Shown piece by piece: positions 6,601-41,643 of a stretch of 64,000 nt of DNA. Each line of letters opens with the position of its first letter. The stretch's first letter is position 1. Where the stretch lies: contig NC_134030.1 of assembly GCF_964204645.1 (NCBI RefSeq), positions 355,355 through 419,354 on the forward strand. The letters are read 5' to 3'. The DNA comes from Tubulanus polymorphus. Taxonomy: Eukaryota; Animalia; Nemertea. A program made the position numbers and the translations under genes. The notes under the pieces were generated by a model, which was not told where the DNA came from, made no database searches, and saw only the letters and a program-made list of their open reading frames with translations.

Positions 6601-8739
6601 TTTACTGGTTGACCTACATTTATATAATAATTAACCAGTTGTTAACCAGTTGATCTACATTTATATATAATTAACCAGTCGATCTACATTTATATAATAA
6701 ACCAGTTGTTAACCAGTTGATCTACATTGATGTATAATAAACCAGTTGTTAACCAGTTGACCTACATTTATATATAATTAACCAGTTGTTAACCCGTTGA
6801 TCCCCATTTATATAATTAACCAGTTGATGTACATTTATATATAATTAACCAGTTGATCTACATTTATATAATCAACCAGTTGTTAACCAGTTGATGTACA
6901 TTTATATAATTAACCAGTTGATCTACATTTATATAATTAACCAGTTGTTAACCAGTTGTTCTACATTTATATATAATTAACCACAGTTGATCTAGAACTT
7001 GTTAACTTATCGAGGCATTTACACACATTTCGGCCGGTTCTGATTGAAAGTAATCTGATTATACAATTCCTGAATCAATAGAGAGTATTCTGGTTGAAAA
7101 ACCAACACCCCAGAACAGAACGCTTTTCCAGAATCAGAATTGTATTCCGGTTGAAATGAACGTAACCAGGACGAGAATTCAGGAATCGATAGAGCTTATT
7201 CCGGTTGAAATGAACGTAACCAGGGCGAGAATTCAGGAATCGGTAGAGCTTATTCCGGTTGAAATGAACGTAACTAGGGAGAGAATTCAGGAATCGGTAG
7301 AGCTTATTCCGGTTGAAATGAACGTAACTAGGGCGAGAATTCAGGAATCGGTAGAGCTTATTCCGGTTGTAATGAACGTAACCAGGGCGAGAATTCAGGA
7401 ATCGGTAGAGCTTATTCCGGTTGAAATGAACGTAACCAGGGAGAGAATTCAGGAATCGGTAGAGCTTATTCCGGTTGAAATGAACGTAACCAGGGAGAGA
7501 ATTCAGGAATCGGTAGAGCTTATTCCGGTTGAAATGAACGTAACCAGGGAGAGAATTCAGGAATCGGTAGAGCTTATTCCGGTTGAAATGAACGTAACCA
7601 GGGCGAGAATTCAGGAATCGGTAGAACTTATTCCGGTTGAAATGAACGTAACCAAGGCGAGAATTCAGGAATCGGTAGAGCTTATTCCGGTTGTAATGAA
7701 TGTAACCAGGGCGAGAATTCAGGAATCGGTGGAGCTTATTCCGGTTGAAATGAACGTAACCAGGGCGAGAATTCAGGACTCGGTAGAGCTTATTCCGGTT
7801 GAAATGAACGAAACCAGGGCGAGAATTCAGGAATCGGTAGAGCTTATTCCGGTTGAAATGAACGTAACCAGGGCGAGAATTCAGGAATCGGTAGAGCTTA
7901 TTCCGGTTGAAATGAACGTAACTAGGGAGAGAATTCAGGAATCGGTGGAGCTTATTCCGGTTGAAATGAACGTAACCAGGGCGAGAATTCAGGAATCGGT
8001 AGAACTTATTCCGGTTGAAATGAACGTAACCAAGGCGAGAATTCAGGAATCGGTAGAGCTTATTCCGGTTGTAATGAACGTAACCAGGGCGAGAATTCAG
8101 GAATCGGTGGAGCTTATTCCGGTTGAAATGAACGTAACCAGGGCGAGAATTCAGGACTCGGTAGAGCTTATTCCGGTTGAAATGAACGTAACCAGGGCGA
8201 GAATTCAGGAATCGGTAGAGCTTATTCCGGTTGAAATGAACGTAACCAGGGCGAGAATTCAGGAATCGGTGGAGCTTATTCCGGTTGAAATGAACGTAAC
8301 CAGGGCGAGAATTCAGGAATCGGTGGAGCTTATTCCGGTTGAAATGAACGTAACCAGGGCGAGAATTCAGGAATCGGTAGAGCTTATTCTGGTTGAAAGC
8401 ACCGGCCAGAATTCCGCAATTGAAAAGAAATCGATCGAAATCGGGAAAATAAATTACCTTGATATAAATCTACACATCTTGAACACACTTCCCACAGAAC
8501 TAATCCTAATGCATAAATATCTATTTGTTTTAAAGATGCTTCGCAGTCTCTGAGATTGACAGCGCCATCTAGAACTTCAGGAGCCATATACCTCAACGTA
8601 CCAACCTACAATCAATCAATCAATCAATCAATCATTAGAACAGTGGGGGTGTGGTTTTAGAGGTACTGGGTGTGGCTTAGATTGAGATTGACAGCACCAT
8701 CTAAAACTTCAGGAGCCATATACCTCAACGTACCAACCT

Positions 8740-8784
<45 letters not shown>

Positions 8785-8887
8785 AGAACAGTGGGGGTGT
8801 GGTTTTAGAGGTACTGGGTGTGGCTTAGATTGAGATTGACAGCACCATCTAAAACTTCAGGAGCCATATACCTCAATGTACCAACCT

Positions 8888-8920
<33 letters not shown>

Positions 8921-11750
8921 AGAACAGTGGGGGTGTGGTTTAGAGGGACACCAGAGGTGTGGTCTAGAGAAGAGATGGGTGGAGTTTAGAGAAGCGTTGG
9001 GGGCGTGGTTAACTTACATCAATCAATGAAGTTTGTTCAGTATTATCGTCGTGTCCCGTTCTGGATAAACGTGATCCGCTGATGCACATCGCGAAACCAA
9101 AATCAATTATTACGCAACTTAAATCCGGTTTTACTAAAATATTCCTCGAGTTTAAATCCCGGTGAGCGATTACCGGTTTAAATTTATCTGCAAAAATAGG
9201 ATGAAAACGATTAGTACAATTAGTTCATTCTCTGATAAGGTTCCGGGTACCTGCGTTTACATCCTCACTTGCCAGGGGTCACCCCCGAACTCGCTTCCAC
9301 AAGCGCCCCCTGGCTGCACCACGATGTATGTTTTCTTTATTGACTCTGGTCGGCTAGTAACCGACTCCAACTACTCGTGAGGTCAAGGGGTTCGGCGAAC
9401 AGCTTTAGCGTTGTGGGTTCGAATCCCTTGACGGGTGAAGATGCTGCATGTAGTACTTACCTCCGATCAGCTGATCAGTATGCAAATGAGCTAAACCGTT
9501 AGCTATCGAGTGACACATCCTCTGGCAAGTGAGCCAGTCGACGGTGTTATTCTTCAAATACGAATTCAACGAACCGAGTTCTAAATAGGTTAAAACAATA
9601 ACGAATTGTGATTCACCGTCTGGAGTGAAACGTTCCTCCGATCCGTAGAACTTCAATAAACTCTCGTGATTCATAAACGGTAGCGTGTAAACGGTTCGTT
9701 CGTTTACGTAATACTGTCTCTGAGCAGACGTAAATACCTTCACCGCTACCGTATGATCGAACAGCGCCCCCTGCCAGATATCGCCGAAACGACCCGATTG
9801 TAACAGTTTATCCAGTTTCAATCGACTCAACTCGTAACACGGACTCGGCGGGTCAAGGTCGTCGTCGTCGCTGCGCGTTCGCCGTAAAGGGTCAAGGTCG
9901 CATTTACGCCTGCTCAACCATAGGCGATAAAATAAATAAAGTAAAACTACGACGACCGTTACCCCGACGACGGACAACAGAGCGATTATGATCGTTTTCT
10001 CTCGGTAATTAGCGTGGTCCGGTAAGAATTGAGCTGAAATTTTCGAAAAGAAAATTATTTCATCAACACAACTTCAAAAACTGATTGTCCCGGAGAAGTG
10101 ACTGCAGAATGACTGTGGGGGGGGGGGGGGTGGTTCCAGGTTGTAATGTAAGGGGGGGGGGGGGGGGTGGTTCCAGGTTGTAATGTAAGGGATGGCTCCA
10201 GGCTGTAAGGGATGGCTCCAGGTTGTAGGGGGTGGCTCCAGGCTGTAAGGGAATGCTCTAGGCTGTAAGGGATGGCTCCTAGCTGTACTTGATGGCTCCA
10301 GGCTGTAAGGGATGGCTCCAGGATGTAAGGGATGGCTCCAGACTGTAGGGGGTGGCTCCAGGCTGTAAGGGATGGCTCCTAGCTGTACTTGATGGCTCCA
10401 GGTTGAAAGAAATGGTTCCAGGTTTAATGGAGATGGCTTGAGGCTGTGAGGGATGTCTCCTGGCTGCTAGGGATAGCTCCAGGCTGTAGGGGGTGGCTCC
10501 AGGTTGTAAGGGATAGCTCCAGGTTGTAAGGGAAGGCTCCAGGCTGCTGTCTGATATCGATACTTACTAGCGGTAGATTTAGGTTTATGAGTTGGAGAGA
10601 ACAGCGCTGGTTTATATACATCAGAGACGTGTGTATTACACAGAGTTGTATTACAACAACAGAATCTTGCATCCTCTTTACTATATGGCTTATCATTAAC
10701 GCAACGGTTACTGCGACAATTCTGTTTATCGGGATGATCCCAGCAACCTACCAAATATAATACAACACTACAGTTACTAACAGTGGCGACACCTGATGGA
10801 TGCCGATAGAACAATCACACAAACCTCTTTTGATCCAGATGATAGAATCGTTGTTGGCGCCTCCCAGTTTCCAGTACGAGAAACAAAAACTGTGTCCACT
10901 TTCACCGGTACAGTGAACAGTCTGTCCGTCGGGTAACACTTTACCGGTACTGGGTTCAGCTCCGAGACCCATTGTCGGGTTCACCACCGATCCATCTGAG
11001 CTCGTTTTAGCGCTTTCATAGAAACGACATACAGTCGACCTGACTCCTATAGGAACCACTGAAATATATAGAAATTACATCCATTTCAGGTATTTAGGCC
11101 TTCGCCCTTAGAGGTATTTACTTCATCGGCAGGAACCTGATGACGCCATGAGACTCTGCCACGTTCCTCCCTCGGCAGGGATTCGAACCTGATGACACCG
11201 TGAGACTCTGCCACGTTCCTCCCTCAGCGGCAGGGATTCGAACCTGATGACATCGCGAGACTCTATCACGTGTTCCTCCCTCGACAGGGATGGGAACCTG
11301 ATGACATCGTGAGACTCTGCCACGTTCCTCCCTCAGCGGCAGGGATTTGAACCTGATGACATCGTGAGACTCTGCCACGTTCCTCCCTCAGCGGCAGGGA
11401 TTGAACCTGATGACATCGTGAGACTCTGCCACGTTCCTCCCTAAGCGGCAGGGATTCGAACCTGATGACATCGTGAGACTCTGACACATTCCTCCCTCAG
11501 CGGCAGGGATTTCAACTTTATAAGACTCTGTCTCTCTGCTAGTAGAGGGGATGATGGCCTGAGCGGGGGGACAGTGGTGTAGGATCAGGTATTCTATGGT
11601 CTAAAGAACTGCTTATTGGACACACTTGACTGATCTCTGTCCAAGATGGAAGATCTCGATTGCGGCAACTAATCACAGCAACTTACCTGTCAAAACTAGA
11701 GCTATCCCCGTGAACCACAAACCACACCGAATATTCACTATCAAAACCAT
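3580..11750 (-). CDS. BMPR2: BMP type II receptor Ser/Thr kinase (BMPR2/wishful thinking-like), 9 coding exons
   Basis: Exons 11687-11750, 10825-11058, 10568-10747, 9461-10033, 9018-9187, 8458-8605, 6477-6613, 5447-5573, 3580-5243; all GT-AG and in phase. Signal peptide, Cys-rich ectodomain (GCW...CCCNTTLCN), TM after [13 protein letters not shown], kinase motifs [57 protein letters not shown], and the long C-terminal tail typical of BMPR2/Wit. Confidence 0.93.
5270..5440. repeat. 30-bp intronic minisatellite
   Basis: ACTGATCCGTGATTGGTCAACGCATGAAAT ~5.5 copies filling most of the last BMPR2 intron. Confidence 0.9.
5636..6440. repeat. 23-bp intronic minisatellite (~35 copies)
   Basis: TGGATCCAGTAACTGTGGAAC(T/C)C tandem array. 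Confidence 0.95.
6605..6995. repeat. AT-rich repeat containing copies of the BMPR2 exon 7 splice acceptor
   Basis: Irregular ~30-42 bp units CCAGTTGA(T/C)CTACATTTATATAATTAA; the real acceptor TAG|GTCAACC at 6613-6616 is the last unit in transcription order. Confidence 0.85.
7140..8400. repeat. 54-bp intronic minisatellite (~23 copies)
   Basis: TTATTCCGGTTGAAATGAACGTAACCAGGGCGAGAATTCAGGAATCGGTAGAGC units; explains the 465-aa ORF. Confidence 0.95.
8551..8950. repeat. 132-148-bp repeat duplicating the BMPR2 exon 6 acceptor and first ~55 nt of exon (3 copies)
   Basis: TGTAG|GTTGGTAC(G/A)TTGAGGTATATGGCTCCTGAAG on the - strand, starting at 8885, 8737 and 8605; unit length varies with a (CAAT)n tract. 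Confidence 0.92.
10190..10545. repeat. 20-bp intronic minisatellite
   Basis: GGATGGCTCCAGGCTGTAAG variants. Confidence 0.85.
11130..11515 (-). repeat. ~55-bp minisatellite with tRNA A/B-box-like motifs (~7 copies)
   Basis: - strand unit contains TGGCAGAGT and CAGGTTCGAATCCC. Confidence 0.8.
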
Positions 11751-25360: not shown

Positions 25361-25703
25361 ATATATTAGTTTTTACACCTCGCGTGTTACCACAGAGACC
25401 TGTATTCACGAAATTCAAACTTTGTGGTTCTACAGTTGTCTGTATATAAACTCTAGTCTAAAACTGCTGCGAATTTTCATATGAAACTTAGATTATTTCA
25501 GATGGATTTTTAGTAAACTCTCAGAGCGAATCGTGTGAGTAGTAATTTCAACAGAGCGCGTGAAATCTTCAGATGATTGTAGTGTGTTCTGTAGCAGGAG
25601 TTTGATGGAAGTATTTTGAAATCGTGGTTCCGCGGCTGTAACCCACAATTTGAGGGAAGCAGTCACTACACTGATTGTCGCGTCAAACTGTTCTGTTCTT
25701 GTC

Positions 25704-26927
25704 ATGGACAATTTTACCGCTATCGTCACCACAACTCGAATATACCGCACCACTGTGAAGACACCGGGATATATCATAGCTTACAAGGGGTTTGCAAAGT
25801 TCAGTTTTTTATTTAGCAACACAATCAATTATCTCTTCTTACTTCCACCTGGAAGTGTGTTTAACTTTCTGACAATAATTCTACTGATAAAGTGTCGCAG
25901 ATATCAGTCAGTTCGTTACACGTTCCCTTATCTCATAACTATCGCGTTTTCAGATCAACTTGTCGTCTTGTTTGAGTTACAGAAATTCCCTTTCCATTTG
26001 AGAGAGTTCGTTGTTTATCGTCTAGGATTTTATAGAGGATGTGGCAGTTATTTTCTATTAGCTAAAAACAGGAAACTATGTCCATCACTTTATTATTTCA
26101 ACTACTACTTCCGTCATCTGCCCAATAAACTGTTTCCTTTGTGTTTGCTACGGAGACTATTTTACGACCAGGCAATATCTGTATCAAACTACATAGTTAT
26201 AGTGATCGCTATCGAGAGATTTGTTTCTATTCGTTTTCCTTTCTTTCACATGAAACATTTCACCGTCACTCAGCGTAAAATTGTAGTAGTTTTTATCATC
26301 TTCTGGGCGTATTTTATGAACTTGGATTCAGCAATCATGCGCAGTCGTGTTAAATTCGTTAAAATTCATAGATACAACGAAACATACGACTCTTTTGTGT
26401 GTCGTCAGTCAATCGCTATAAGCCAGCCCCAGACACGAGCAATAGCAGTTGCGAAAACAATTTTACAAGATATATTTCCATCTGTAATGATTGTAATATT
26501 ATCAGTGTTAACTGCTTCATTACGCAATAAGAGATCTGAGATGAGAGCGAAGAGAACAGATCGTCATCAATCTGCAGCCAGTAAAACTCTTGTAGTTATA
26601 GTTATGCTGTATATTTTACTAGTTTTACCGCATGCTGTAGTTAAAAGCATCTACTATCTACTACTGGCTTTAAACCAAGTGATTAAAAAAAATGATAAAA
26701 ACATCACTGACCCTCATTTACGATACTTACTTTATGAAATTTGGATCGACTTACGATGGTTCCTGATACCATTTCGACAATTTGTGTACTGCGTGAATTT
26801 CTTTATCTACATCGGAACATTGAAAGTTTTCCGGAAAGAATTTATCAAACTATTTACTGATTGTTTTTGTTGTAAAATAAGGAACATAATCTGTCGTATA
26901 AACTTCAAAGAACCCGAATCTGTGTGA
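25704..26927 (+). CDS. Class A (rhodopsin-like) GPCR, peptide-receptor-like, paralog 1
   Basis: Single exon with ~7 hydrophobic segments: GSVFN (TM1), YLITIAFSD (TM2), AIERFVSI (TM3), LVLP (TM6), VNFFIY...FRKE (TM7/helix 8). First ATG 25704. Confidence 0.88.
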   Translation: MDNFTAIVTTTRIYRTTVKTPGYIIAYKGFAKFSFLFSNTINYLFLLPPGSVFNFLTIILLIKCRRYQSVRYTFPYLITIAFSDQLVVLFELQKFPFHLREFVVYRLGFYRGCGSYFLLAKNRKLCPSLYYFNYYFRHLPNKLFPLCLLRRLFYDQAISVSNYIVIVIAIERFVSIRFPFFHMKHFTVTQRKIVVVFIIFWAYFMNLDSAIMRSRVKFVKIHRYNETYDSFVCRQSIAISQPQTRAIAVAKTILQDIFPSVMIVILSVLTASLRNKRSEMRAKRTDRHQSAASKTLVVIVMLYILLVLPHAVVKSIYYLLLALNQVIKKNDKNITDPHLRYLLYEIWIDLRWFLIPFRQFVYCVNFFIYIGTLKVFRKEFIKLFTDCFCCKIRNIICRINFKEPESV

Positions 26928-27921: not shown

Positions 27922-28404
27922 TGTTGTCTATGTACAGAAGGTTGAATCAATAAATACATAATCGGAAATAAGTAAATTTTCCAAATGCTGTTTGTTGCAT
28001 TTCGCCTCTTGTGTCTCAATGGAACTTGAAGTGTATCAGTGCTGGTATATGTAATACTAGTATATATTAGTTTTCACGCCTCACATGTTACCACAGAGAC
28101 CTGTATTCACGAAATTCAAACTTTATGGTTCTACAGTTGTCTGTATATAAACTCGAGTCTAAAACTGCTGCGAATTTTCATATGAAACTTAGATTATTTC
28201 AGATGGATTTTTAGTAAACTCTCAGAGCGAATCGTGTGAGTAGTAATTTCAACAGAGCGCGTAAAATGTTCAAATGATTATAGTGTGTTCTGTAGCAGGA
28301 GTTTGATGGAAGTATTTTGAAATCGTGGTACCACGGCTGTAACCCACAATGTGAGGGACGCAGTCACTACACAGATTGTCGCGTCAAACTGTTCTGTTCT
28401 TGTC

Positions 28405-29616
28405 ATGGACAATTTTACCGCTATCGTCACTACAACTCGAATATACCGCACCACTGTGAAGACACCGGGATATATCTTAGCTTTCATAAGGTTTTCAGCC
28501 TTCAGTATTGTGTTTAGCCGAGACTTCAATTATCTCTTCTTACTTCCACCGGGAAGTGTGTTTAACTTTCTGACAATAATTTTACTGATTAAGTGTCGCA
28601 GATATCAGTCAGTTCGTTACACGTTCCCTTATCTGATAACTATCGCGTTTTCAGATCAATTTTTCGTCTTGTTTGAGTTACTGGCTTTCCCTTGGTATTT
28701 GAAAGACTTTGTAGTTTCTCGTCTAGGATTTTATAGAGCATGTCGCAGTAGATATCTGACATTCACTAAACACAGTAAACTATGTCCATCACTTTACTAT
28801 TTCAATTACTATTTCAATTATCTGCCCAATAAACTGTTTCCTATGTGTTTGCTACGGAACCTATTTTACGACCAGGCAATATCTGTATCAAACTACACAG
28901 TTATAGTGATCGCTATCGAGAGATTTGTTTCTATTCGTTTTCCTTTCTTTCACATGAAACATTTCACCGTCACTCGCCGTAAAATTGCAGTAGTTTTTAT
29001 CATCTTCTGGGCGTATTTTATGAACTTGGATTCAGCAATCATGCGCAGTCGTGTTGCTTTAGTTAAATTTCTTAGACTCAACGAAACATACGTCTATTTT
29101 TCGTGTTATCCGACAATCGCTTCAAGCCTGGCCCAGAGAGAAGCAATGACACTTGCAAAAAGAATTTTACGAGAGAAAGTTCCTTCTATAATGATTGTAA
29201 TATTATCAGTGTTAACTGCTTCATTTCGCAATAAGAGATCTGAGATAAGAGCGAATCGTCATCAATCTTCAGCCAGTAAAACTCTTCTAGTTATAGTTAT
29301 GGTGTATATTTTACTAGTTTTACCGCATGCTGTAGTTAAAACCATTCATGACGTAATAAACACCTTACAGCGGTCGTCTAAAGGAAGTAAAGGAAGATAT
29401 ATCTTTGCCCATTTAATAAACCCTTATTTACGATACCTTCTTAGTGGTATATGGATGCACTTAACATGGTTCCTGCAAACATTTCGACACTTTGTGTTCT
29501 GCGTGAATTTCTTTATCTACATTGGAACATTGAAAGTTTTCCGGAAAGAATTTATTAAACTATTTACTGATTGTTTTTGTTGTAAAATAAAATCTGTAAT
29601 AAATAAAAAAATCTGA
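28405..29616 (+). CDS. Class A GPCR, paralog 2
   Basis: Same motifs; tandem duplicate of 25704-26927 including ~350 bp of upstream sequence. Confidence 0.88.
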   Translation: MDNFTAIVTTTRIYRTTVKTPGYILAFIRFSAFSIVFSRDFNYLFLLPPGSVFNFLTIILLIKCRRYQSVRYTFPYLITIAFSDQFFVLFELLAFPWYLKDFVVSRLGFYRACRSRYLTFTKHSKLCPSLYYFNYYFNYLPNKLFPMCLLRNLFYDQAISVSNYTVIVIAIERFVSIRFPFFHMKHFTVTRRKIAVVFIIFWAYFMNLDSAIMRSRVALVKFLRLNETYVYFSCYPTIASSLAQREAMTLAKRILREKVPSIMIVILSVLTASFRNKRSEIRANRHQSSASKTLLVIVMVYILLVLPHAVVKTIHDVINTLQRSSKGSKGRYIFAHLINPYLRYLLSGIWMHLTWFLQTFRHFVFCVNFFIYIGTLKVFRKEFIKLFTDCFCCKIKSVINKKI

Positions 29617-30810: not shown

Positions 30811-30819
30811 ACTCTTATG

Positions 30820-31358
30820 TCAGTAATTACTGGGTTCGAACCCGGGACACCCCTGTACATCCTCTATTCAGCATCAGTACCGCACTCTGAACCAGTATCA
30901 GTAATTACTGGGTTCGAACCCGGGACACCCCTGTACATCCTCTATTCAAAATAAGGACCACTCTGAATGAGTATCAGTAATTAATGGGATCGAACCCGGG
31001 CCATCCCTGTACATCCTCTATTCAGCATCAGGACCACTCTGAATCAGTGTCAGTAATTACTGGGTTCAAACCCGGGACACCCCTGTACATCCTCTATTCA
31101 GCATCAGGGCCACTCTGAATCAGTATCAGTAATTACTGTGTTCGAACCCGGGACACCCCTGTACATCCTCTATTCAACATCAGTACCACTCTGAATCAGT
31201 GTCAGTAATTACTGTGTTCGAACCCGGGACACCCCTGTACATCCTCTATTCAACATCAGTACCACTCTGAATCAGTGTCAGTAATTACTGTGTTCGAACC
31301 CGGGACACCCCTGTACATCCTCTATTCAGCATCAGTACCACTCTGAATCAGTGTCAGT
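30820..31358. repeat. 76-bp tRNA-like minisatellite (~7 copies)
   Basis: Same unit as 1262-1600; abuts the truncated 5' end of the LINE. Confidence 0.92.
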
Positions 31359-34533: not shown

Positions 34534-37500
34534 ATGGAAACCGAACCGTTATTACCGCGGGAATTGCGGGTGGTCCCCGGTGGTCCGGGATCGGATGACC
34601 ACGACGACGGGACTAGTCGCTCCGTCGATTTTGAAGGCAGTCACAGAGAAAGGACTAACACTTACGCCGATGTTTTACGGAATAAAGATATCAGAAATCA
34701 GACTGAAGTAAAAGTTTACGGACGGCGCTGGTATATTTTATTCATGTTTTCGCTGTTAGGACTCGGGCAGGGATGTGTTTGGAATTCGTTCGGACCTATC
34801 AGTCAGTCGATTAAAGATGTATTCGGCTGGCAGGACTCGACGATAGCCCTATCCACGAACTGGGCCTGTATTACGTACGTTTTGTCGTCAGTATTCTTTT
34901 CGTGGCTTCTAGAAGTAAAAGGTTTGTCGCTAATTTGTATTTAAGACCGAATTAGACGAAATAAATTCCCAAGGCCCGGTTTTATAGACTGGTTTTACCT
35001 TTGACCCGGGCTAACTCAATTGATAATGAATTAAGTGAGCCCCCGGGTTAAAGGTTAAACCAGTCTGTAAAACCGGGCCCTAGAAGAATAATTGTTCATA
35101 AAGCGATATTATTATATACTCTTGCAACCCTTTAAGGCAGAGGCTCTAGTCTCAATGAGTTGAGAATATTTTCAAAATTGTCAGATGAAACTTTTTTAAC
35201 TTTTGTAAGAACTGAAGAAAAAATTATTCGGAGGATTATTTAGGAAGCGAGAAAATGAATTCGTTAAAATTCCGAATCGGACATGTCTAAGTTTAATAAT
35301 TCCTGCACTGGAATTATCCAATGAATCAATGAATCATTATCCAATACACAACAAAGGAGGCTTAACAGTTTACAATAGAGGCTTATACGAGAACAACATT
35401 CAATAATTACTAAATTCATCATAGGTATCTCTGAACATGTATATATTTCAATGTTTTATTGAATAGGTTTACGCGTGTCGGTGATATTGACTTCCGCTTT
35501 ACTGGTTGTTGGATGCGGTATAAAATGTATCTCGAAGTGGGATCCATACTTCACCTGGTAATAAATTATCGTCGATTTATTTATTCGTCAATTTTCCCTT
35601 CCCCGACCAGGAAATAGATTCACGCCAACACTAATGATGTGACTTTAGCGGGCGGCAATCAAACCCTGGCAAGCGAGGATGTCATTCATTGGGCCCGTGT
35701 CGTCACCTACTTAGCCTTTGAGGGGGGACCTGAAATTCCAACAAGTGTAGAAATGAAAAGTCAAAGTCCCTCTAATAGGCCTCCTTATACAATAGAAGTA
35801 TATACACTGAGTTAATACGTGTTTCGTCTGTTTCTGGTCACATTCCGCCTGATGATTCGCTGTTATACTTAACAGTCAAGGCTTTGGGTTTTTTCCAATA
35901 AATACGATCCCATATTCGGATATGCACCAGATTCATTTACTGATGGGATTGTAACAAATCCCCATTAAAATTTCCAATAAATGCATAATAAAATTGGACA
36001 CAGAATTTGCATATTAATATTTGCATATTTTAATTTTAAATGATATCGGATAGGTTGGCACATCTGGGTTGTATTGTAAGCGGATTTGCTGGACCGGTAG
36101 TGATGGCTGGACCTCCGTGCGTTTCGGCGACCTGGTTCCCAGCTAACGGTAGAACTACAGCAACGGCCATCATGATCGTATCCAACTATTTAGGAGTAGC
36201 ATTGTCGTTTATTTTGGGTGAGTTTCACGGCAGAAGTTTACAAAAATAAATTGGAAATTCTATTTGATTGATTTTATTGATATAGATATTAAATTTAATC
36301 GCTGGATTTGAATATTTCATTACTCCTGAGTTAATTTATTCCAGGTCCGTTAATCGTGAATACTCATACAACCTATAATAATATTACAACTCCAACTCCT
36401 AATATATCTTACATCAGGTGAGTTTTATTTACAGCTACAGGTACCAGTACCTGATGCAGATTGCTCAATAAACTTCGTTATTTTATATCAAAGACAGGTA
36501 CCATCAGGTGCTCGTCGAAAATCGGGTCTATGAACTTATTATATATTACCTTAAACTTTGTTATCTTTGATTTGTTTCAGTTCCGATATTTTTATTGATT
36601 TTTCTAATACTTCCAATGTGACGGTGGCGCCACCAACTTTAGGTGAGGATTTTATCTTATTGCCCGAGAGATTAGACCGATATAATCTGTTTACATGAAG
36701 CTCATCTTCTTAGAAATTGCATCTATTTGAATTCATTTCTTCAGGAATAATGTCAAACCCCTAACCGCGCTAAGTGGCCTTCAGCGTGGCTACATTATCC
36801 TAGAAATGTCCTTATTTTTCTCCTGGACCTCGACCTTGCGATTCCGCCCCGGTGTAACCTACGTAGAACAGTTTTCGAGGGGTTGCATCAGTTTGCAATA
36901 TCGCGTTTCTTCAATAAATTATCTACTATATGATGATGAAACGATTAATACATTTTCAATGACTATTGAGGACCCAGTTTCACAAAAAGTTTTTATTCTT
37001 AAATCGATTTAATTTCTTCATTAATTCAGTTTATCTTGAATCGATTTAGGGCTTAATCTTTTTTGTGAAACTGGACCCCGGTCTATAAAAATATATGTGG
37101 GATTTCGAACGATTTCTACAACTGTTAATAGACAAAATATATACAAACCAACATGAACATGGATTGTAGGATTGTATTCGATGTAAATTAGTAAAGTTGT
37201 TTTGTTGTTTTTCAGCCCCTTCGAAGGACAACGAATCGATAGAGGCCCAAAGGGCGGAAATAATGATACTTCTATACATAGGTATATGATCTATATATTA
37301 TCGATCTTTGTCGGAAATATCACAAGTCAAAATGATAAATAAATGATAATTTCGCTGATAACCTCTGATAACCGCCGAACAGAGTTTGTTTTCTTGCATA
37401 GTGGTTTTGATACAAAGTTCATTAAGAATTTCAGCGCGTCTTAAGTTCAGTACTTCAACCGACAGGGTAAACACTCAGTATCTGTCTGTCTGGCTGTCAA

Positions 37501-40500
37501 TGAAAGGCCTCGAGAATAAGCTTGGGCCTCGAGAATAATCTTGGGCCTCGATAAAAGGCTTGGGCCTCGAGATAGGCTCGGACCTCGGGAATATGCTTGG
37601 GCCTCGAGAATAAGCTTGGGCCTCAGGAATATGCTTGGGCCTCGGGAATAGGTCTGAGCTCCGTGAACGGGCTTGGACCTCGAGAATAGGCTTGGGCCTC
37701 GGGAGATGCTTGGGCTTCGAGCTTCGTGAACGGACAGGCTTCGAGGCCGAACCTCGGCTTTTTGATTAGGCCTCAGCTTCCATATTGGGCTTGGGTTTGC
37801 TTTGCGATTGGGCCTAAATCTTTCTACATTTGACACTGTACAATATTTCTACAATTTTGATAGGATAAATAGATGAATAAAAAATAATATGTTATCTATA
37901 TATTGTAGACGATATTTCTACATTTAATACCAATTTGATAGATATATAGTATAATGATGATATGACGTGTATATATTGTAGAGGAGGCGTTCCACGTGAT
38001 TGTGTTTATTTGTATCCTCATCTATTTCCCTCCACATCCGCCATTACCGCCGACAATATCAGCATCTACAGATCGCGTCAGTTTCATACGAGGCCTCGGT
38101 CAGGCTTTCTGGTAAGTTATTTTCTTTTCACAAAAAAAGTATATTTCAGCACAAAATTAGTGTTCGCAACCGTCGTACCATTGACCATGGCCTGCATCCG
38201 AGCAGTTAACCAGTCACCAATAACCCTAACCCTAGACTCGAACTTGCCACCTCCGGCATGCAAGCCGAGCATACTAACCCCTAGACCATAGACCTGTAGC
38301 GTCTGACAGAGTTTGTAAATTTCTCTGGTCAGTGTGGTGTCTGGTGACCAGTCAGGTGTGATGACTGGTGACCAGTCAGGTGTGGTAACTGGTGACCAGT
38401 CAGGTGTGATGACTGGTGACCAGTCAGGTGTGGTAACTGGTGACCAGTCAGGTGTGATGACTGGTGACCAGTCAGGTGTGGTAACTGGTGACCAGTCAGG
38501 TGTGGTAACTGGTCACCAGTCAGGTGTGGTAACTGGTGACCAGTCAGGTGTGGTGACTGGTGACCAGTCAGGTGTGGTGACTGGTGACCAGTCAGGTGTG
38601 GTGACTGGTGACCAGTCAGGTGTGGTAACTGGTCGTGTGGCCATTCACTACATATCACTCTTTTCTTGAAGAATATTAATGACTCTTTGCTCCCCAACTT
38701 CCAAACTAACTAATTCAATTGTTTACCAGATGAAAATCTCGGACTCATTTTGTTTGTATTTTTAGTCACGCACGATTGTGGGTAATGGCAATACCATACG
38801 GATTAGGGTTAGGTGTTTATAACTGTTGGAACGCGATATTAGATGTGAATTTGAGCCCGTTAGGAATACAGCAGTCTGAAGCAGGCTGGCTCGGGTTTTA
38901 CGCTGTAATGGCCGGCTGTACCGGAGCCCTTATCGTGTCCTGGTAAGCTAAATTATCATTATTATTAGTGAATTATTACTATTTAGATGAAAATGATTAT
39001 CTGAAAATTATTACGGTAAACAAAATTCGGTCTATCATTTGGATAAGTCGTCACATTACTGAAGTCATCTCTATTTTTGAGTCTCAATTTGTATTTCTAA
39101 TTCAATTTACTAAGTGTAAGTCATCATTTGTATATAAGTCATCAACAAATCAATGAATTTGGTCCCAACTGCAAACGCATTTATCACAAAATGATTATAT
39201 CTTTGTTTGTGTTTTGTGCTGTAGGATTTCCGATCATTTCCTGGGTCACATGAAGATATTTTGTATCGTGTTGTTTATTGGTGCTGGTGGCTCCGCCTTG
39301 TGGAGCATGTTACTTATTGGTCAATATATACCGTTCAATTCTGGTAAGATAATAATCACCAGTCTCAATGAGACGATTAATTAGAAAGCAAATATCATTT
39401 GAATTCGGAATTTTCTGTTAAGGCTAAACAAAAATGATACCTTGTCCGCAACGGCCGGGTTATTTTTGTAAAATATGATTAAATTTGTAATCAATTTATT
39501 TCTGATGCCGGGTCTGTTATATGATAAAATAAATCACGATTAAAACAAAAAGTAATGCACAGGGTAGATAGGCGGCTGGACCGGGTCAACTTTTAAACTC
39601 AGCAGAAATGAGAATCATGGTATCGATATTTTTTGCCTAAGATTTAATTATATTTTCTCTGACTCTCCTTTCGCAGGTGAACTATATACATCTATAATAG
39701 TGGGCGGTTTATTGATATACACGTGTATAGCACTGTTTTTTGAAATGGCTTGTGAATCGGCGTATCCGATAGCGGAGTCTGTGATCAGCGGCATGTTTGC
39801 TTTACTAAACAATATCTGTGGAGTGACGTTCCTTCTACTCTTCTATATTCCTAATATCGGTAAGTATACGACTAATGAACTCGTGTTCAATATTTATTAT
39901 GTTCTAGATACGGAATGGATGAACTGGTGTTTTATAATGAACTCGTGTTCAATATTTATTATGTTCTAGGTACGGAATGGATGAACTGGTGCTTTATAAT
40001 GAACTCGTGTTCAATATTTATTATGTTCTAGGTACGGAATGGATGAACTGGTGCTTTATAATGAACTCGTGTTCAATATTTATTATGTTCTAGGTACGGA
40101 ATGGATGAACTGGTGTTTTATAATGAACTCGTGTTCAATATTTATTATGTTCTAGGTACGGAATGGATGAACTGGTGCTTTATAATGAACTCGTGTTCAA
40201 TATTTATTATGTTCTAGGTACGGAATGGATGAACTGGTGTTTTATAATGAACTCGTGTTCAATATTTATCATGTTCTAGGTGCGGAATGGATGAACTGGT
40301 GTTTTATAATGAACTCGTGTTCAATATTTATTATGTTCTAGGTGCGGAATGGATGAACTGATGTTTTATAATGAACTCGTGTTCAATATTTATTATGTTC
40401 TAGGTACGGAATGGATGAACTGGTGTTTAACGGGTGCTCTGTTTATCGCTATACCGATATTAATGTTCGCTAAAGTCACCTATAACCGATTGGAACTGGA

Positions 40501-40624
40501 TGTCCCGGATGCGGATGAAGTACTTCACCATGGTAACGAACATCACAATGAGAATCATATACAGTACGATGAATACGGACGCAGTAAATCGATATCTTCA
40601 GAATCAGAAATTCACTTTCTTTAA
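34534..40624 (+). CDS. SLC49A4: MFS transporter, SLC49A4/DIRC2-like (FLVCR family), 11 exons
   Basis: Exons approx. 34534-34921, 35467-35557, 36054-36217, 36345-36417, 36581-36642, 37216-37281, 37982-38111, 38766-38942, 39225-39343, 39677-39859, 40404-40624. Motifs: ETEPLL dileucine signal, VYGRRWYIL, QGCVWNSFGPI, SATWFPANGRTTATAI, FFEMACESAYP, WMNWCL, YNRLELD. Confidence 0.9.
34973..35080. mobile_element. Short palindromic MITE
   Basis: GGCCCGGTTTTATAGACTGGTTT...AAACCAGTCTGTAAAACCGGGCC. Confidence 0.75.
36969..37078. mobile_element. Short MITE (GGNCCAGTTT-terminus family)
   Basis: GGACCCAGTTTCACAAAAAG...CTTTTTGTGAAACTGGACCC. Confidence 0.7.
37505..37720. repeat. ~20-bp degenerate intronic minisatellite
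   Basis: GCTTGGGCCTCGAGAATA variants. Confidence 0.8.
38328..38635. repeat. 24-bp intronic minisatellite (~12 copies)
   Basis: CTGGTGACCAGTCAGGTGTG(G/A)T(A/G)A units. Confidence 0.93.
39872..40428 (+). repeat. 62-bp tandem repeat, 9 copies of the SLC49A4 last-exon acceptor
   Basis: TTATGTTCTAG|(G/A)T(A/G)CGGAATGGATGAACTG with junctions at 39908, 39970, 40032, 40094, 40156, 40218, 40280, 40342 and 40404. Confidence 0.95.
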
Positions 40625-41571: not shown

Positions 41572-41643
41572 TGCGTTCGCCGGGAATCGAACCCGGATCC
41601 ATTGCTTGGAAGGCAACGATGCTAACCTTTACACCACGAACGC
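41572..41643 (-). tRNA. tRNA-Gly (TCC)
   Basis: GCGTTCGTGGTGTAAAGGTTAGCATCGTTGCCTTCCAAGCAATGGATCCGGGTTCGATTCCCGGCGAACGCA folds into a cloverleaf with anticodon TCC; followed by a T10 Pol III terminator. Confidence 0.95.

Follow-up and report, generated by a model that had tools for sequence, protein, structure and literature searches.

The last intron of a transporter gene in the ribbon worm Tubulanus polymorphus is, apart from a short head, a run of tandem copies of its own 3′ splice junction. This raises the question of what such a run does: whether its junctions are used as successive splice sites, whether it represents the making of a new intron, or whether it is simply tolerated while the mRNA is made as before. 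A preliminary description of the locus had proposed a ratchet for recursive splicing or an intermediate of intron gain. We addressed the question in a window of 64,000 nt, the whole stretch of DNA that was analysed, and all positions refer to it.

The transporter gene and its last intron

Evidence from DNA and RNA was taken from the sequencing runs of one study (n=3), which were available as contigs, and two of these runs, X1 and X2, were used. X1 was read as DNA owing to its even depth of ~30, and X2 as RNA, since nine GT..AG intervals are missing from its contigs and the depth over most introns is zero. Exons were translated singly and the frame was derived from their summed lengths and phases, all of them being open. 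The X2 joint 39858>40403, with its cut moved by +1 to give GT..AG, is equivalent to 39859>40404. The gene model is as follows.

34534-40624, plus strand: coding part of an 11-exon MFS transporter gene (putatively SLC49/FLVCR-like); 1674 nt, i.e. 557 codons and the stop; nine X2 joints, with exon lengths and phases summing to an open frame
34534-34921, plus strand: exon 1
35467-35557, plus strand: exon 2
36054-36217, plus strand: exon 3
36345-36417, plus strand: exon 4
36581-36642, plus strand: exon 5
37216-37281, plus strand: exon 6
37982-38111, plus strand: exon 7
38766-38942, plus strand: exon 8
39225-39343, plus strand: exon 9
39677-39859, plus strand: exon 10, ending in TCG before the donor, the last G being base 1 of a split Gly codon; X2 record 11 (depth 341) covers 39676-39858 and then crosses the joint
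39860-40403, plus strand: last intron, 544 nt, phase 1, GTAAGT...TTCTAG; X2 joint, and the same place and phase in four paralogs
39860-39872, plus strand: unique intron head of 13 nt with the real donor GTAAGT, outside the array; predicted U1 pairing of -11.2 kcal/mol
40404-40624, plus strand: coding part of exon 11 (last transmembrane helix, C-terminal tail and stop TAA); aligns with the last exons of the paralogs; X2 record 12, depth 940

The X2 contigs thus define exon 10 (39677-39859) and exon 11 (40404 onwards), and the array-bearing intron is the last one, as had been proposed.

The identity of the gene was sought exon by exon. Pfam MFS_1 matched exon 3 (E 0.0013) and exon 1 (E 0.57), both below the cut-off. 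The best solved-structure match for exon 1 was FLVCR2 (E 0.0063), and exon 10 matched FLVCR2 and FLVCR1 only among solved structures, collinear with the match of exon 1. The SLC49 name given in the preliminary description agrees with these matches, although they are weak and come from individual exons, and the gene may tentatively be regarded as an SLC49/FLVCR-like MFS transporter. Naming it more closely than SLC49-like was attempted and abandoned, single exons being too short as queries.

A minisatellite across the 3′ splice junction

Tandem Repeats Finder reports a minisatellite at 39873-40428 with a period of 62, 9.0 copies, 97% matches, no indels and a score of 1056. In the register of the gene, one 62-bp unit comprises the final 35 nt of the intron and the initial 27 nt of exon 11. 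Each copy therefore carries a full acceptor, consisting of a branch-point-like TAAT, a pyrimidine-rich stretch and TAG, followed by 27 nt of exon start. The sites are listed below, a slash marking the intron-exon cut.

39873-40428, plus strand: 62-bp x 9.0 minisatellite, 35 nt of intron plus 27 nt of exon 11 per unit, unique in the genome
39902-39913, plus strand: decoy acceptor 1, TTCTAG/ATACGG, GT lost, 48 nt from the donor
39964-40347, plus strand: decoy acceptors 2-8, AG at 39968-9, 40030-1, 40092-3, 40154-5, 40216-7, 40278-9 and 40340-1, each followed by GTACGG or GTGCGG
40398-40409, plus strand: real acceptor TTCTAG/GTACGG (copy 9), used in the observed mRNA; X2 record 11 enters copy-9-specific sequence and record 12 starts at 40403

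When the copies are aligned in register, TTCTAG is present in 9/9 and only 6/62 unit positions vary. The six bases that follow are ATACGG in copy 1 (39907/39908), GTACGG in copies 2-6 and 9, and GTGCGG in copies 7-8. Eight junctions consequently read TTCTAG/GT(A or G)CGG, namely seven decoys and the real acceptor at 40403/40404. Both repeat finding and alignment bear out the nine copies described earlier, with eight GT junctions and one TAG/AT. Moreover, the self-contained 62-nt GT...AG units reported there do exist; there are seven, spanning 39970-40403, the eighth GT junction being the real acceptor. Upstream of the array the intron has 13 nt only, donor GTAAGT included, and without the eight extra units its length would be 48 nt.

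A search of the whole genome (268 Mb, 77 contigs) matched the 62-bp unit to its own locus only, which rules out a dispersed repeat or transposon as the source of the unit. No Rfam family matched within 39860-40428, and the predicted fold of the array was no better than that of shuffled sequences (z = -0.49).

Tandem arrays carry a risk of misassembly, and an artefact would mean that the copy number is inflated or that no array exists at all. We consider this highly improbable. The k-mer mass of the array is 17,720 depth.nt in X1, where single-copy sequence has a depth of ~33; this fits ~9 copies. The mass for units 2-6 equals about five collapsed copies, a separate X1 contig reaches 162 nt into units 7-9 with 0 mismatches, and the edges of the array are the exact break points of the RNA contigs. 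X1 may derive from the assembled individual. X2 comes from another sample, and k-mers specific to copies 7-8 are absent from it, which hints at a different allele.

Repeat setting and similar arrays

The window is rich in tandem repeats, with 47 arrays occupying 19.5% of its 64,000 nt; three of them lie inside the transporter gene. A second junction-spanning duplication is found in the window at 8551-8950 (minus strand), where a BMPR2-like kinase exon has its acceptor and first part in duplicate (148 bp x 2.1); the duplication contains an (ATTG)n tract and its junction reads TTGTAG/GT. Elsewhere in the genome, an intron of RUVBL2 holds an array of 77 bp x 20.9 that is 97% identical (L018; G000:C11:13778500-13780900, minus strand). 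Its unit, TTTCAG/GAATGGCTCAGGC, again joins an acceptor to an exon start, with no GT at the junction, which reads CAG/GA. In addition, an Ig-receptor gene carries an array of 82 bp x 9.6 with the junction CAG/CA.

Other features of the window were recorded in passing. A 76-78-bp satellite with GGTTCGAACCCGGGAC occurs at 1261-1608, 2189-2358 and 30818-31358; GGTTCGAACCCGGGAC resembles a tRNA T-arm, and the satellite may be a tandem repeat that arose from a tRNA or SINE and occurs at several places. A tRNA gene lies at 41572-41643 on the minus strand (Rfam tRNA, 63.4 bits, E 1.3e-12), ~1 kb downstream of the transporter stop codon. Two long open frames on the plus strand, at 25620-26924 and 28321-29613 (435 and 431 codons from stop to stop), are clearly paralogous, show rhodopsin-type receptor motifs by eye and have the appearance of intronless receptor genes in a tandem pair.

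The acceptor used in the mRNA

Record 11 of X2 is a contig of 509 nt at depth 341 that contains exons 8-10 and continues across the joint 39859>40404 for a further 30 nt, into copy-9-specific sequence. It is unbroken at the donor. No branch occurs in it at 0, 2, 22 or 25 nt past the joint, the points at which copy 1, copies 7-8, the C-type copies and the T-type copies would diverge. Among the 15 X2 joints listed, out of 29, there is none from exon 10 to a decoy, and the sole listed joint at this donor is 39859>40404. Therefore, it is the last acceptor to which exon 10 is spliced in the main mRNA. Rare forms are lost from contigs, which also collapse the array, such that splicing intermediates cannot show in them, and decoy use below roughly 1/10 to 1/4 of the main form is compatible with these data.

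The decoys could nevertheless be real alternative 3′ splice sites, in which case their use would give a stable mRNA whose product is a truncated transporter, without the last helix and with a short hydrophobic tail at its end. The truncation itself had been predicted correctly: the reading frames give the peptide described, copies 7-8 reading GAEW... and copy 8 having an earlier TGA. From any decoy an in-frame stop follows within 21 codons, in what becomes the last exon, and array-bearing RNA is present in X2. However, no exon-10-to-decoy joint is found among those listed and the spliced contig is unbranched, the array is young (97% identity) with a tail that would be an accident of intron sequence, and copy 8 already carries the earlier TGA. 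We therefore regard a role as alternative sites as very unlikely. Among RNA-derived ORFs in a protein collection, no match was obtained for the ORF at 39568-39966, which would encode the exon-10-to-decoy peptide, and there was no record for the product of 40403-40621; both blanks carry little weight, since RNA contigs of this species seem to fall outside such collections.

RNA from the array

We then compared X2 depth along the gene with the exon model. Depth bins equal exon overlap multiplied by contig depth, except for bins with high-copy repeats and three others. In bin 39800-39999 exon 10 accounts for the entire signal (59 nt x 341 / 200 = 100.6), and no X2 RNA is seen there from the intron head, copy 1 or the unspliced donor. 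Bin 40000-40199, at 203.7, holds ~40,700 depth.nt of array sequence. A 34-nt contig at 40399-40432 with a depth of ~160 fits the values of the next two bins (0.8 for 40200-40399, and ~5,290 depth.nt above the exon signal for 40400-40599). This contig holds four 31-mers that are obtainable only from an unspliced last acceptor, and record 12 starts exactly at 40403, as expected where a second path enters.

By this bin arithmetic the unspliced last acceptor has a depth of ~160 in X2 against 341 for the spliced joint, approximately half the depth or a third of the molecules at the junction. For intron 7 the corresponding value is about a tenth; apart from stretches that high-copy repeats mask, no signal is seen in the remaining introns. 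The last intron is thus the least completely removed intron of the gene in X2. Depth of the mRNA climbs steeply towards the 3′ end (138, 341 and 940). Given this steep 3′ coverage bias, the depths could come from polyadenylated RNA that simply retains the whole intron; decoy use and stepwise splicing fit them as well.

Repeats are also present in the other introns. Intron 7 contains a minisatellite of 24 bp x 12.8 at 38328-38633, 130 nt upstream of the exon-8 acceptor. Besides the last intron, X2 covers only the piece of intron from this array to exon 8, at depth 14 compared with 138 for the spliced joint. Within introns 8 and 9, short stretches at 39034-39130 and 39445-39614 have contig depths between thousands and tens of thousands, in the DNA run as in the RNA run; these are high-copy, expressed repeat fragments.

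Stepwise removal of the intron

The recursive ratchet of the preliminary description would work as follows. The exon-10 donor would join to a decoy, the junction would regenerate a donor (G/GTACGG), and this donor would be joined in turn to an acceptor further on, the cycle ending at the last copy. Mistaken choices would in this manner be corrected, and the array would be tolerated because the exon starts with GT. We judge both the stepwise route and this account of its tolerance to be unlikely.

The juxtaposed AG/GT on which the proposal was built is indeed present, since the seven decoys and the real site all read this way. Nonetheless, AG/GT occurs at 4/9 RNA-backed acceptors of the transporter gene and at 2/4 paralog acceptors, a small sample of ordinary acceptors gives 6/17, and its presence at the array junctions is not special in this gene. 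The junctions have it because exon 11 starts inside a Gly GGT codon.

Pairing with the conserved 5′ end of U1 was then predicted for each kind of donor. The regenerated donor TCG/GTACGG pairs at -4.5 kcal/mol, compared with -11.2 for the real donor. The ten donors used in the gene range from -5.1 to -12.2 kcal/mol, and the regenerated donor is weaker than every one of them. The same site in situ, TAG/GTACGG, reaches -5.7 and lies within the weakest donors in use (-5.1 to -6.0). On these predicted energies the regenerated donor would be marginal, not impossible. Length also bears on the matter: the shortest of 18 introns checked in the genome has 77-78 nt and none has ≤62 nt. Splicing of one 62-nt unit, or across the 48-nt reach to copy 1, may be too short, although a regenerated donor could reach the acceptor two units on.

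Other observations speak to both sides. X2 contains array RNA and the unspliced last acceptor and shows no unspliced donor, which favours stepwise removal, yet 3′ coverage bias with plain intron retention also matches these depths. The decoy closest to the donor, copy 1, has lost its GT, and no branch leaves the spliced contig where joints to decoys would diverge from it. Moreover, the RUVBL2 array has 20 decoys reading CAG/GA, at which no ratchet is possible. Of the earlier claim, then, the juxtaposed sites stand, whereas the weak regenerated donor, the 544-nt intron and a first copy without GT count against a ratchet, for which we obtained no positive support.

Ratchet points such as those of Drosophila Ubx, kuz and Bx likewise have AG/GT juxtaposed, such that a donor would regenerate after the first splice. 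However, such points are conserved, occur in long introns and depend on a cryptic exon together with a donor that can compete (PMC8605326); theirs are introns of tens of kb with strong donors, in contrast to 544 nt, young copies and a weak donor here. A published parallel for stepwise splicing is offered by the dual-specific sites in tandem repeats of human UBC and VCX3A (Duan et al. 2024, PMC10809524). UBC uses AGGT sites in its repeats, and as in these genes the array has AGGT at the same place in every unit, units that read GT...AG, and sites that could each act as acceptor or donor. Unlike the array, UBC has coding, in-frame units and an isoform ladder, whereas the 62-nt unit is intronic and contains a stop, with no ladder seen in the contigs.

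More broadly, the array could act on splicing either through stepwise removal by way of its regenerable GTs or by holding back the last intron, with 1/4-1/3 of polyadenylated transcripts unspliced or decoy-spliced. We think it doubtful that it does so; if true, copy number would tune transporter output.

Age of the intron

The second proposal was that the locus is an intermediate of intron gain, in which tandem duplication of an AGGT segment creates new introns. A published model of this kind exists and the route is documented (PMC3265369, PMC4974935), and the units of the array do read GT...AG. Exons 10 and 11 were therefore searched separately against the whole genome, and both searches found the same four paralogs. 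In each, the exon-10 and exon-11 matches are collinear, and between them lies a GT..AG intron whose position and phase (phase 1) are those of the last intron; the lengths are 376, 249, 94 and 91 nt. The Gly codon is split at the junction in 3/4 paralogs, and in two of these it is GGT, as in the array-bearing gene. Since place and phase are common to all four, the intron is older than the duplications of the gene family.

It follows that the array enlarged an existing intron, and the reading as intron gain fails: four paralogs have theirs at this codon position and in this phase, so that none was gained. In addition, the unit length is not a multiple of three and there is a stop inside, so that no copy can turn into a coding exon. 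We give this reading next to no weight. The locus resembles the Rogers model of intron gain by AGGT tandem duplication (PMC3265369, PMC4974935) in that AGGT duplication yields GT...AG units. It differs in that the existing acceptor of an old intron was duplicated, whereby an intron was lengthened and none created.

The array as a probable by-product

We conclude that the array is most likely a mirage-type minisatellite, amplified in tandem over the 3′ splice junction of an old intron and tolerated as a by-product of a repeat-rich genome, in which tandem arrays make up about a fifth of the sequence. We infer that a 62-bp segment across the 3′ splice junction of the old phase-1 intron was multiplied by replication slippage or unequal exchange. 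The extra copies lie in the intron, which they would have lengthened from ~48 to 544 nt. Productive mRNA would be formed in one step by joining the exon-10 donor to the last copy, the only copy attached to the rest of the exon. The AG/GT of the junctions would be a by-product of an exon that starts with GT in a conserved Gly codon, as opposed to a ratchet under selection. The array itself is probably neutral, or carries a mild cost, the last intron being the least completely removed in X2.

Mirages were described in amphioxus, where those in Adh3, globin, TnC and PGBD5 copy splice sites and leave the normal mRNA undisturbed, many copies having AG/GT (PMC3087553, PMC3902484). The array resembles the amphioxus cases (Adh3, globin BflGb6/BflGb9, TnC, PGBD5): repeats of tens of bp lie across an intron-exon boundary with the splice sites copied, and here too the regular mRNA is still made (record 11, depth 341; open model of 557 codons). 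At 39873-40428 the repeat is head to tail, its unit is tens of bp long, and the boundary that it spans is fixed by the joint 39859>40404. Unlike those cases it lies in another phylum; length polymorphism is a noted trait of mirages. A literature search found no reports of junction-spanning minisatellites from nemerteans, which is no proof of their absence.

Two points sit less easily with a tolerated mirage. Firstly, competition is to be expected among nine acceptors that are almost identical, and the sequence offers no reason for the success of the last. Secondly, array RNA and the unspliced last acceptor could reflect decoy use or stepwise removal and not slow splicing, the RNA side of the mirage account being one run in the form of contigs.

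Taken by itself, the locus matters little, being one more junction-spanning minisatellite. As a class, however, arrays of up to 20 identical acceptors, with and without GT, constitute a natural experiment on how the productive site is chosen. They also bear on the benefit, if any, of re-splicing at regenerated donors and on a possible cost of the arrays to expression. Moreover, mirage-type repeats in a ribbon worm would mean that these structures are not peculiar to amphioxus.
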